DNA from: Phyllobates terribilis
Lineage: Eukaryota
Direction: 5' to 3'
Length of the DNA: 64,000 nucleotides
Assembly: GCF_046119375.1 (NCBI RefSeq)
Contig: NW_027362767.1
Span: 56,854,001-56,918,000 of the forward strand
Every line of letters begins with the position of its first letter. Position 1 is the stretch's first letter. A program made the translations under genes and the position numbers. Below the pieces are notes generated by a model. The model saw nothing but the letters and a program-made list of their open reading frames with translations. It searched no databases and was not told where the DNA came from. Shown one piece after another: positions 52,699 to 57,626 of the stretch.

Positions 52699-52824
52699 TT
52701 AAGAGTTGGCATTGGGCCCTTTTTTCTTGCCAAATGTCGGAACCACATTGACAAATCTGCGGTTGTACTGCATGCGTCTTTTGGCTCGCCCGGTTTTCTT
52801 TTTCCTCTTTTCTTGTTTTGCCAC
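52699..52824 (-). CDS. FAU: FAU-like (FUBI-eS30) last exon
   Basis: aatag|[41 protein letters not shown]; AATAAA (minus strand) at 52561-52566. Confidence 0.96.
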
Positions 52825-54100
52825 CTATTAAATATATATAAAAAATATTATTAAATATTAAAATTATATTTGAATAATAAATTATTTAATACTATATATT
52901 AAAAACATATAAAATATTAGGTCATTACTTTAAGAAGTGTAGTTCTAGATAGGAGTGACTGCGAGCATCACTAGTCCATTCTTCAGGCAGCGACTCACTA
53001 ATTTTTACAATACAAGTATTAAAAAAAAAAAAAATTGATGGCTAAAAAATGTTGCAAATAGAACAAAGGAGCTAAACACGAAAAAAAAAGAGGGTGCCCT
53101 ATAACTTTGATGGATTCCGCTCCTATTTGGGCACTGTCCAATAAAAAAGCTGAAAAAAAAACAAAAACACGCTTTTCCAAAATTTTTCAGCAAATTAAAA
53201 ACTCCTCCAAAAATGTCCCAAAAGGAGCGTTCCCCACTGGAAAACAGCCATGAGTGCACACAGCCCTACTGTGAAAGAAGACAGGACAGGATCAAGGAGA
53301 GGCATGGATCCTTCAGGAGACGGTATAGGGAAGAGTCAGACGGCCGTATACCTTGGATGAGGATCGTAACGCAGTGCTCGGACTGGCTGGCGGCTCTCCT
53401 GCATAGAAATACATGCTGTCACGCTCGAGTCAGGAGAGCTGCCGGCCAGTCCGAGCATTATGTTATGATCCTCGTCCGAGTTATACGGCCGTCTGACTCT
53501 TCCCTTAGGTGTAAACTCCTATACACCGGTATTTATTTTTGTAAATCTGTCACCAGATTTCACCACGTAAAGTGAATATAATAGTAAGTCTTATACCTGA
53601 TGAGACTGGAGCATTTACGTTCAAACCACAGTGTCAAAATAGCTGTATATTATTGATACTAAATTGAGCATTTTATCGGCCCAGCTAAAGAGAGAGCTCA
53701 TGGGTCCAAGTGTATTCAATGTATGCACGTCCAGCCCGCCTGACAACTGCAGCTTGTACTGAGCAGTGCAAAATCACAGACGCAGCAGGGAGGAGGGACA
53801 CTCAGGAACTAACAATCAGGTTTTGTGGATGAAAGTTTACTCTAAACTTTCAGAAGGCATTATACAACCAATCTGATATAGTTTTGGAAAGTAAAAACAC
53901 TGGAAAGACAATTGAGCGCAGTGAAAAACAGTTTGTACTAACTGGATGCAATAAGGAGTTCATCAGGTCTAAAAGATCAATGTAATAATTGATGAAATTA
54001 TTAGTTAAATTTGATGACAGATTTAAGCATTTAATTTAAGCAAAAAATATTTAAGTTTTTGCCAAATTAATATACTATTAAATAAATAGTGCTCACTTAC

Positions 54101-54156
54101 TTTGGGGGTCTGACCTCTCACCTTCCCTGCACGAGCAAGTGAGCCGTGGACTTTAC
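54101..54156 (-). CDS. FAU: FAU-like coding exon 3 (56 nt)
   Basis: ttgcag|(G)[18 protein letters not shown]|GTAAGT, the start of eS30. Confidence 0.96.
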
Positions 54157-54272
54157 CTGCAAGAAGAAGACCCTGTATGACTACACGGTTCAGGCAGAGG
54201 ATCCTTACTGAATATTACAATCATCAGATGCTGAGGACTGGGCCAATACTCCAACCTTTCCAGGTCTCCTAC

Positions 54273-54417
54273 CTCCGAGAAGTCTCCCCGACACATTCAG
54301 GGTGCACTGATCCTGCACCCCACAATCTGACAGCACGGCCTCATCGTCCAGAGAGATCCCAGCACAAGACAGGACCAGATCCCAATCCAGGAGGCCCTCC
54401 AGCTCCGCGATATGAGT
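54273..54417 (-). CDS. FAU: FAU-like coding exon 2 (145 nt), FUBI ubiquitin-like domain
   Basis: ttgtag|THIAELEGLLDWDLVLSCAGISLDDEAVLSDCGVQDQCTLNVSGRLLG G|GTAGGA. Confidence 0.93.
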
Positions 54418-54530
54418 CTACAACACAGGGACACTAAAAACATTCAGAGCAGAAAAGGTAACGTGTCTGTCTGAAAACATGACCCCCTTATACAGCAGCA
54501 TCAGGATCAACCTCTTCTATAGATTATATA

Positions 54531-54981
54531 CAGGTGCATCTCACTAAGTTAGAATATCATGAAAAAGTTAATTTATTTCAGTTCTTCAATACAAAAAGTG
54601 AAACTCGTATATTATATAGTCATTACACACAGAGGGATCTATTTCATGTGTTTATTTCTGTTAATGTTGATGATTATGGCTTACAGACAATGAAAACACA
54701 AAAGTCATTATCTCAGTAAATTAGAATACTTTATAACAGCTTGAAAAATGTTTTTAAAATCCGAAATGTTGTCCTACTGAAATGTATGTTCAGTAAATGC
54801 CCTCAATACTTGGTCGAGGCTCCTTTTGCGTCAATTACTGCATCAATTAACAGTAATAAACACTTGAAATAGATCACTCTGTGTGTAATGACTCTATATA
54901 ATATGAGTTTCACTTTTTGTATTGAAGAACTGAAATAAATTAACTTTTTTTATGATATTCTAATTTAGTGAAATGCACCTG
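54531..54981. mobile_element. Internally deleted non-autonomous Tc1-like element (451 bp)
   Basis: TA|CAGGTGCATCTCA ... GAAATGCACCTG|TA with ~130-bp inverted arms. Confidence 0.88.
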
Positions 54982-55059
54982 TAGGACTGTAGGAGCAGGA
55001 GGTGCTAAACATGGGAACAGTAGGCCTAGGGAAGAAATGTATCAATACACTACTTTACC

Positions 55060-55650
55060 TTCATTACACTGATCCAGGATTATGGCCTGTATTATACTGC
55101 AGAGCTGCACTCACTATTCTGCTGGTGCAGTCACTGTGTACATACATTACATTACTGATCCTGGGTTACATCCTGTATTATACTCCAGAGCCACACTCAC
55201 TATTCTGCTGGTGCAGTCATTGTGTGCATACAATACATTACTGATCCTGTACTGACCCCACATTACATCCTGTATTATACTGCAGAGCTGCACTCACTAT
55301 TCTGCTGGTGCAGTCACTGTGTACATACATTACTGATCCTGTACTGATCCTGAGTTACACCCTGTATTATACTCCAGAGCTGCACTCACTATTCTGCTGG
55401 TGCAGTCACTCTGTACATACATTACATTACTTATTCTGTACTGATCCTGAGTTACATCCTGTATTATACTGCAGAGCTGCACTCACTATTCCGCTGGTGC
55501 AGTCGCTGTGTACATACATTACATTACTGATCTTGAGTTACATCCTGTATTATACTCCAGAGCTGCACTCACTATTCTGCTTGTGCAGTCACTGTGTACA
55601 TACATTACTGGTACTAAGTTACATGCAATATTCTAGTCCAGAGCTGCATT
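55060..55650. repeat. ~85-100-bp degenerate tandem repeat (GAGCTGCACTCACTATTCTGCTGGTGCAGTCACTGTGTACATACATTAC...)
   Basis: Direct reading, about 6 copies. Confidence 0.9.
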
Positions 55651-55924
55651 CAGACCACAGCAACTGTGGCTATGTGACATGAAAGGGGGCAATGGGTCAT
55701 CTAGGATTGTGATGTCATTCTATGCGACATAATCATAAAAGTGCACTGCACCCGCTGTCAGGATTCTTTGGCGTCAACGGGCAGTTACGTTATCATGTTT
55801 GCATGCTTGTGGGTCACATGCCAACTAAACGTGCCCCTTCTCTCAACAGAAGTGCACTGAGAGAGGATGACCAAGTCTAGTCAGCATGTGACAGTGTGCG
55901 CACAGCTCGTACCCCAGTATATAC

Positions 55925-55999
55925 CTTAATATCCAGCACTGTGTCTTGGCTGGACACATTCAGTGTGTGCAGGGTCCGGCCCGTTATAAAAATCTGCAT
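55925..55999 (-). CDS. FAU: FAU-like coding exon 1 (75 nt coding; exon starts at 56006)
   Basis: ccccag|TACAACC ATG, MQIFITGRTLHTLNVSSQDTVLDIK|GTAT. Full CDS complement(join(52699..52824,54101..54156,54273..54417,55925..55999)) is 402 nt, 133 aa. Confidence 0.92.
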
Positions 56000-56099
56000 G
56001 GTTGTACTGGGGGGAAAAAAAAAAAAAGGAGAAAGCAATCAAATCCCTGTCCTGACGTAGAGGATCCAATTGTAACAATCTAGCAGCCGATGGGTTGCC

Positions 56100-57268
56100 A
56101 TAATGGCCAGTAGTCTGCTGAAAACCCCCATGCCTGTCATGATGGTATTATAGCTAGCGTTCATAGGAGACCCTGATTTCTGCTATATACAGCAATGCCG
56201 GGGGATTTGCTTTATATAGCAGAAGCGATCAGACAATCACAGGTTCAAGTTCCCTAAGGGGACTAAGTGAAGGGTTAATGAAACCACCGTATGCGCATCA
56301 AGTTCCTATGTTCATGTCTATTGGTGCTTTTGAGCATAAATGTATTGTGGGAGTTCAAGTCATTCAGCTCAAAGAGCATCGGTGTGCAGGCAAAACGCGT
56401 TGCCATTGTGCATTTGTGATATTAAATCCTTTTAATATATTTTTTCAATAAAGTTTTTGCATTTTAAGGAGCTGGATTTGGATTCTATTGGAAAACTGTT
56501 CCAAGGAACCAAAGAAATACAGTGAAAAAGTTTTAAAAAAAAATATAAAAAATAAAATCTCAAGTTAAAATCAAGTCCCCACCATTAAGAAATAAAAAAT
56601 GCACATATTAGGTATCACTGCGTTCGTAACAGTCCGATCTATCAAAATATAAAATAAATTAATCCGATCGATAAACAGCATTGCGAGAACAAGATCAGAA
56701 CACCAGAATTGTATTTTTTTTTGGCCACTGAAACAACACAGAAAAGTGCAATAAGAGGCAATAAAAACATTGTATCTACCCCAAAATGGTATTAATAAAA
56801 ACGGCAGCTCAGGGCGCAAAAAACAAGCCCTCGCCCAGCTGCATATACCGAAAATTGAAAATGCTACGGGTCTCGGTAAATCGTGTTACAAGAAAAAAAA
56901 ATACAATTTAAAAGTTTTTTTCACAACTTAAATAAGGGAAAAGCTATAAGTGTTTGGTATCTGCGCACTCGTACTGACCTGGGGAATCATATTGTCAGGT
57001 CAGTATTACCGTAAAGTGAACGCTGTAAATAAAAAGCCCAAAAAACAATTGTGGAATTGATTTTTTTTGCTATTTTTCCTCACTTGGAGATGCTTTCCTG
57101 CTCTCCAGTGCATAACATGATAAAATGGATGGCGTCAATCAGAAGTACAACTCGTCCCGCAAAAAACAAACCCTCGTACGGCTACGGGAACAGAAAAATA
57201 AAAGAGTTATGGCTCCGGGAAGAAGAGATGGAAAAAACAGAAGTGAAAAATCGCCTGGCGTGAAGGGG
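56100..57268. mobile_element. piggyBac-like non-autonomous element remnant in FAU-like intron 1
   Basis: Right end GTGAAGGGG|TTAA and subterminal GTTATGGCTC motif, also seen near 63640; left end unresolved. Confidence 0.5.
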
Positions 57269-57598
57269 TTAAGGGCCCAACCTCTCAGGAGACGATTTCT
57301 CTATTGACACGACGACATGGAGACCGGACGCTGCGGATTACAACTCCCAGCATGTGCACGATGGGGGTCATAGTGTCACATCAGCGGTAGTGCCACAAGC
57401 TGTTCTCTAGGGGGCGCCTCACTGGTGTAGGGGTAAAAGTCTGACTTTTTGTTTTGCTAATTTGTTGCTAGCTGGAAACCATCAACAAGCAGGCTGACGG
57501 ATTTCTGCATCTAGCCATGCAATAACTGATCATAAAAGCATTAACGAGTAGAAAAACAGCGCAAAAGTCGCCCGATCTCGTCGCTAGTTACCTCTCAC

Positions 57599-57626
57599 CT
57601 CCTGCGCCAAGACCCAGAGAGGAAAA
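57599..57626 (-). promoter_or_regulatory. Putative non-coding first exon of the FAU-like gene with a 5' oligopyrimidine (TOP-like) tract
   Basis: Minus strand TTTTCCTCTCTGGGTCTTGGCGCAGGAG|GTGAG; ribosomal-protein genes typically have a short TOP exon 1. Confidence 0.7.

Follow-up and report, generated by a model that had tools for sequence, protein, structure and literature searches.

The ribosomal protein eS30 is made as part of the FAU precursor, in which it is fused across a di-glycine junction to the ubiquitin-like protein FUBI. The 40S ribosomal subunit can mature only if FUBI is cleaved off eS30, and this cleavage is carried out by USP36 with the help of USP16 (PMC8354635, PMC10611586). 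Across 156 species, the only strictly conserved features of FUBI are the Phe4 patch, the RXLGG tail, Val40 and Pro47, and the protein is known to vary considerably; the hydrophobic Leu42/Val40/Pro47 patch, together with Leu72, excludes other deubiquitinases, while FUBI probes carrying the V40R/P47Q exchanges still react fully with USP36 and USP16 and additionally gain partial reactivity towards USP42 (PMC10611586). FAU has thus far been treated as a single-copy gene, and the Leu42/Val40/Pro47 patch has been presented as a conserved restriction to USP36 and USP16. Here we describe an FAU-type gene present in a stretch of 64,000 nucleotides (nt) from Phyllobates terribilis (NCBI RefSeq assembly GCF_046119375.1, contig NW_027362767.1, positions 56,854,001 to 56,918,000 of the forward strand; hereafter the window, in whose coordinates all positions are given). 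We consider it likely that this locus is functional and belongs to a second lineage of FAU, FAU-B, which arose through a duplication at the DNA level before frogs and salamanders split and has persisted beside the canonical lineage FAU-A. FAU-B resembles UBA52 and RPS27A, in which a leader with the ubiquitin fold is cut off after the di-glycine to free a ribosomal protein (PMC8354635), but the leader of these two precursors is the nearly invariant ubiquitin itself, whereas that of FAU-B is a fast-evolving relative of FUBI.

Human FAU (2L7R, 8BS3) and the P. terribilis gene share their architecture, their length of 133 amino acids, the di-glycine junction and the positions of their introns. Identities to the window's protein were counted for each exon separately. 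The eS30 moiety of P. terribilis is identical to its mammalian counterparts at 58 of 59 residues (18 of 18 in the 56-nt exon and 40 of 41 in the last exon), and a single K>R exchange separates it from the human and rabbit proteins. FUBI, by contrast, is about 51% identical to the primate proteins (51% over 73 positions in the comparison with macaque). It keeps Phe4, His11, Val40 and the RLLGG tail of the human protein, but carries Arg6>Thr, Leu42>Ser, Pro47>Ser, Leu62>Gln and Thr63>Cys. Hence, the set of strictly conserved FUBI features (PMC10611586) is incomplete in this frog: Pro47 is replaced by Ser, as is Leu42 at the centre of the patch. Our literature search returned no description of a natural FUBI protein that lacks Pro47. 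The original prediction for this DNA, made from the sequence without database searches, had named one K>R exchange in a near-invariant eS30 and had described a heavily changed FUBI that nevertheless keeps its di-glycine; both statements are borne out. In Pfam, the last exon matches Ribosomal_S30 (PF04758) with 56.5 bits (cut-off 27), and the 145-nt exon matches the ubiquitin family (PF00240) with an E value of 1.7e-4, a score that stays below the cut-off because this exon holds only two thirds of the domain. When compared with solved structures, the 145-nt exon scores 37-39 bits with FUBI chains (38-39 bits with human FUBI). A search of the ESM Atlas returned generic ubiquitin clusters only.

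The gene is located on the minus strand and is complete, with 133 codons and a stop (402 nt of coding sequence) that specify the entire FUBI-GG-eS30 fusion. Four coding exons of 75, 145, 56 and 126 nt had been predicted, and they indeed form an intact frame flanked by canonical splice sites. Transcription is predicted from the sequence to start with a non-coding leader exon (57599-57626) that opens with the 11-nt pyrimidine tract TTTTCCTCTCT (57616-57626), resembling a terminal oligopyrimidine (TOP) element, and ends at the donor GTGAGA. The ATG-bearing exon (55925-56006) provides FUBI residues 1-25 through its 75-nt coding part (55925-55999). It is followed by the 145-nt exon (54273-54417) that encodes FUBI residues 26-73, including S42, S47, Q62, C63 and the RLLG(G) tail, along with the first base of the Gly74 codon, and by the 56-nt exon (54101-54156) that contributes the remainder of Gly74 and eS30 residues 1-18. 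The coding part of the last exon (52699-52824; 126 nt including the TAA stop codon) encodes eS30 residues 19-59, and an AATAAA polyadenylation signal (52561-52566) lies 133 nt past the stop. The leader and the polyadenylation signal, too, had been part of the original reading. The junction between the 145-nt and 56-nt exons splits the Gly74 codon and reads RLLG-G|KVHG, so that the di-glycine directly precedes eS30. All four introns (1592, 1507, 116 and 1276 nt) are of the GT-AG type; the coding exons have the donors GTATAT, GTAGGA and GTAAGT, and the acceptors are AG dinucleotides that follow pyrimidine-rich or AT-rich sequences. The introns interrupt the coding sequence at ancestral positions, after K25, within G74 and after K92, and matching boundaries are found in read-through isoforms or exon-bounded fragments of fish, mammalian and frog FAU proteins (P0046, P0087, P0003, P0120). 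A search with Rfam over 53047-57700 gave no match, and no intronic small nucleolar RNA was thus detected.

When the 145-nt exon was compared with 1.84 billion representatives, there was one close FUBI match, a protein of Engystomops pustulosus with 81% identity; the next matches were fragments of fish and mammalian FAU proteins with 51-57% identity. Word searches seeded with the Engystomops protein, followed by a profile search, revealed two types of FAU proteins in amphibians among the best 120 of about 4,000 matches listed. The type represented by the P. terribilis gene, type B, is present in every neobatrachian frog that was retrieved (Engystomops, Dendropsophus, Eleutherodactylus, Leptodactylus, Rhinoderma, Bufo, Ranitomeya, Dendrobates, Nanorana, Mantella, Rana, Lithobates, Aquarana, Hyperolius and Gastrophryne), and it was also found in Ascaphus and in the salamanders Pleurodeles and Lissotriton; examples are KAG8561418.1 from Engystomops, XP_075470482.1 from Ascaphus and XP_069064836.1 from Pleurodeles. 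Throughout this group, the patch is marked by Ser or Thr at position 42 and by Ala, Ser or Thr at position 47. The other type-B gene models belong to the same lineage as the P. terribilis gene, carry the same signature residues and differ from it by species-level substitutions only.

The canonical type, type A, was found by the profile search in Rhinoderma darwinii and Ranitomeya imitator, and these proteins keep both Leu42 and Pro47. Each of the two frogs possesses both types, encoded on separate chromosome-sized contigs: XP_075693305.1 (A) and XP_075700075.1 (B) in Rhinoderma darwinii, and XP_069596313.1 (A) and XP_069591025.1 (B) in Ranitomeya imitator. Chain 7oyc_e2, the FAU protein in a structure of the Xenopus laevis ribosome, is likewise of type A. 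These amphibian type-A proteins are the same kind of fusion as the type-B proteins and have a nearly identical eS30, but they differ from them by forming a clade of their own, by the retained patch residues and by the chromosomal location of their genes. Within one species, the FUBI halves of A and B are 49-54% identical, and their eS30 moieties agree at 57-59 of 59 residues. Two named FAU genes, faua and faub, are also known from a fish, the zebrafish, and neither Leu42 nor Pro47 has changed in the fish 'a' proteins.

The proteins closest to that of P. terribilis are the type-B proteins of poison frogs. Its FUBI is 85% identical to that of the Ranitomeya imitator B protein, the closest relative retrieved by this measure, 73-82% identical to the other hyloid B proteins retrieved, 59-68% identical to those of ranoid and microhylid frogs and of Ascaphus, and 49-51% identical to the frog A proteins. 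The residues encoded by the 75-nt exon coincide with those of dendrobatid type-B proteins at 20-22 of 25 positions. Three changes, Gln8>Arg, Asp14>Asn and Cys37>Trp, are private to the P. terribilis FUBI-B.

In a maximum-likelihood tree of 32 proteins, all B sequences, including those of the salamanders and of Ascaphus, form one clade (support 100/99), and the order within this clade follows the species tree: salamanders branch off first, then Ascaphus, and then the ranoid and hyloid frogs. The frog A proteins form a separate clade (96/91). Since salamanders are included in the type-B clade, the split between A and B must be old. Salamander and frog B proteins share a set of signature residues (position 6, D17, D19, S/T42, Y/C43, a residue other than Pro at position 47, Q62 and C63), and a duplication confined to frogs would therefore require many reversals in frog A. 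Judged from these sequences, the duplication most likely predates the split between frogs and salamanders. Cys63 is common to B and to the FAU proteins of fish and sharks and occurs in no tetrapod A protein, a distribution that may weakly hint at a still older origin of B. The suggestion that the locus is a second, ancient FAU paralog is supported: it does not group with canonical amphibian FAU, a grouping that had been named in advance as speaking against paralogy, and A and B occupy different chromosomes in two frogs. Taken together, the data support B as an old paralog that arose at the DNA level and is neither a retrocopy nor merely a fast-evolving ortholog. We found no paper on a paralog of FAU or FUBI in amphibians in the literature we searched, nor one on an FAU gene located beside FKBP3.

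The A copies of Rhinoderma and Ranitomeya imitator are 80% identical in FUBI, and the B copies 81%. Because the two types have evolved at similar rates between these species, the large gap between A and B reflects the age of the duplication or an early burst of change, and not a currently faster evolution of B.

Several observations weigh against an old and functional FAU-B lineage in P. terribilis. FUBI evolves fast in both lineages, as two hyloid families are about 80% identical to each other in A and likewise in B, and part of the divergence is therefore ordinary FUBI drift. The backbone of the tree, where B, frog A, caecilian A and the amniotes meet, lacks resolution. Forcing frog A and frog B together to the exclusion of the salamanders costs 14.4 log-likelihood units with a p value of 0.094 in the approximately unbiased (AU) test, so that a duplication restricted to frogs is not formally rejected; the same holds for trees in which B is forced to group with frog A (AU p 0.51) or all amphibians are forced together (p 0.33). 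The coexistence of A and B was observed in two related frogs, and its extension to P. terribilis would be an extrapolation. Transcription and splicing of the P. terribilis copy are judged most likely from its sequence, and the structural result reported below was obtained with a relative and not with the joined protein of P. terribilis. Finally, the B protein of Leptodactylus fuscus (P0121) stands apart from all others by eight changes in its last eS30 exon and may be losing constraint or becoming specialised. The bullfrog Aquarana catesbeiana possesses an additional B-like FAU protein (XP_073480189.1; P0141) with three substitutions in eS30. This protein, whose gene lies on a different contig (745 Mb, as against 239 Mb) and which is also represented on a Logan contig of 1.45 kb, could stem from a recent duplication or from a retrocopy that is expressed. 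The constraint on B thus differs from one species to another.

We regard as unlikely, but worth stating, a more far-reaching interpretation in which FAU-B would date back to the whole-genome duplications of early vertebrates and would have been lost in amniotes, and in which FUBI-B, its Leu42/Pro47 patch being polar and no longer hydrophobic, would be a distinct ubiquitin-like modifier with a protease or partner specificity of its own. Under this proposal, FAU-B would sit in a block containing FKBP3 and FANCM that is equivalent to human 14q21, and the paralogous block would be human 11q13, the site of FAU. If this were true, there would be two differently controlled routes to eS30.

That the B lineage is real but that P. 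terribilis has lost its A copy, leaving the present locus as the sole gene for eS30, seems improbable to us. Duplicates of ribosomal protein genes are commonly lost in a reciprocal fashion, and among the matches listed the salamanders, Ascaphus and many frogs are represented by B only; nothing points directly to such a loss in P. terribilis, and Ranitomeya imitator, the closest relative retrieved, has both copies. It is very improbable that the locus is simply the single orthologous FAU gene of P. terribilis whose FUBI half has drifted fast. The considerable variation of FUBI (PMC10611586), the ordinary FAU product name that RefSeq gives to B models, and the fact that most frog species have a B protein only among the matches listed would all agree with such a view. 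However, with the best 120 of about 4,000 matches listed, missing A proteins mean little, and a single ortholog is at odds with the presence of A and B on different chromosomes in two hyloid species, with the type-A FAU protein of the Xenopus ribosome, and with the separation of A and B into two well-supported clades. A decaying duplicate or a retrocopy without function is extremely improbable, since the much-changed FUBI half and the eS30 changes in Leptodactylus and in the extra bullfrog copy, which would speak for it, stand against a gene with an intact frame, canonical splice sites, a CpG-rich promoter, a polyadenylation signal, an eS30 that still matches mammals at all but one residue despite a split older than that between frogs and salamanders, and four GT-AG introns at ancestral positions where a processed retrocopy has no introns and a poly-A tail at its insertion site; a retrocopy had already been discounted in the original prediction.

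Expression of FAU-B would start from a CpG-rich, TOP-like bidirectional promoter, and splicing would yield the 133-residue FUBI-B-GG-eS30 precursor. Cleavage after the di-glycine would free an eS30 that is essentially identical to the product of FAU-A, and the main job of FAU-B would then be a second supply of eS30. In other species, intact type-B open frames are found on Logan or ENA contigs of 0.8-1.5 kb; these contigs are most simply read as spliced mRNAs, because the genomic B gene spans several kilobases. The bullfrog UniProt entry C1C4S2, named 40S ribosomal protein S30, is a type-B protein as well.

The freed FUBI-B would still fold as FUBI does and would have its Phe4 patch, His11, Val40 and RXLGG tail in place, with Ser instead of both Leu42 and Pro47 in the hydrophobic patch. 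A model of the closest full-length relative, from Anomaloglossus (P0260), which was built with a 28-sequence alignment, exhibits a beta-grasp fold with predicted local distance difference test (pLDDT) values of 78-90 over residues 1-70, and it places residue 42 in the third strand. The structure that this model matches best is Fubi in its complex with USP36 (8bs3_B), with a template-modelling (TM) score of 0.95 and a root-mean-square deviation of 0.9 Å. By analogy with the V40R/P47Q probes, which keep their reactivity with USP36 and USP16 and open FUBI to USP42, we suggest that USP36 and USP16 most likely still cleave FUBI-B and that its restriction against other deubiquitinases is looser. The distinct processing or partners that FUBI-B might have beyond this are a matter of speculation.

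FAU-B, a paralog kept since before frogs and salamanders split, provides a natural evolutionary experiment on the patch rule, as it combines a polar patch with an untouched eS30. It could reveal whether processing depends on the patch, whether other deubiquitinases can substitute, and whether FUBI, once free, acts in its own right. RefSeq already lists B gene models, which it names as ordinary FAU products and does not tell apart from A. As a consequence of this shared name, amphibian expression studies, orthology tables and phylogenomic data sets can mix the two genes. In addition, an FAU-B protein of the salamander type is filed at NCBI as '30S ribosomal protein S30e [Escherichia coli]' (WP_176265490.1; P0264), evidently a contamination in a bacterial record.

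The CpG-rich intergenic segment at 57627-57957 separates the leader exon of FAU-B from the first exon of a THAP-domain gene (about 57958-58120, plus strand), which is the head-to-head partner of the FAU paralog; the segment is a putative promoter shared by the two genes. The ratio of observed to expected CpG is 0.73 over 57501-58300, and three GCGCATGCG motifs, which resemble NRF1 sites, are located in the intergenic segment at 57702, 57752 and 57780. FKBP3, a neighbour that had been named in the original prediction, lies at 46597-50497 on the plus strand, where exons encoding its BTHB and FKBP_C domains were found; it is convergent with the FAU paralog and serves as a synteny anchor. PRPF39 was not seen within the 64-kb window. 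Human FAU adjoins MRPL49 in a head-to-head arrangement, and this neighbourhood is not matched here, where a THAP-domain exon is the head-to-head partner and FKBP3 is convergent.

Two repeats are present in the intron that separates the 75-nt coding exon from the 145-nt one. One is a tandem repeat with periods of 97 and 189 bp (55086-55610; about five copies, 86-90% matches), and the other is a long inverted repeat (54529-54983) with arms of 104 nt (93%) and outer arms of 38 nt (92%) that resembles a short non-autonomous transposon bounded by terminal inverted repeats. The last intron contains a near-perfect hairpin (53327-53505) with 75-nt arms that are 88% complementary and a 29-nt loop, probably a small foldback element. 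Beyond the THAP exon follows a GC-rich minisatellite (58261-61093) with about 84 copies of a 34-bp unit. The 1054-residue open frame at 57958-61122 (plus strand) consists of the THAP zinc-finger first exon running open into this repeat and is an artefact of the minisatellite. Similarly, a C-rich minisatellite at 37396-39401 (32-bp unit, about 63 copies, 98% matches) accounts for an 896-residue open frame without a Pfam match and for a spike of 72% GC. Remnants of Tc1/mariner transposases of the Sleeping Beauty-like kind, with matches to HTH_SB, HTH_Tnp_Tc3_2 and DDE_3, are located at 61566-62603 on the minus strand and at 23294-24196 on the plus strand.

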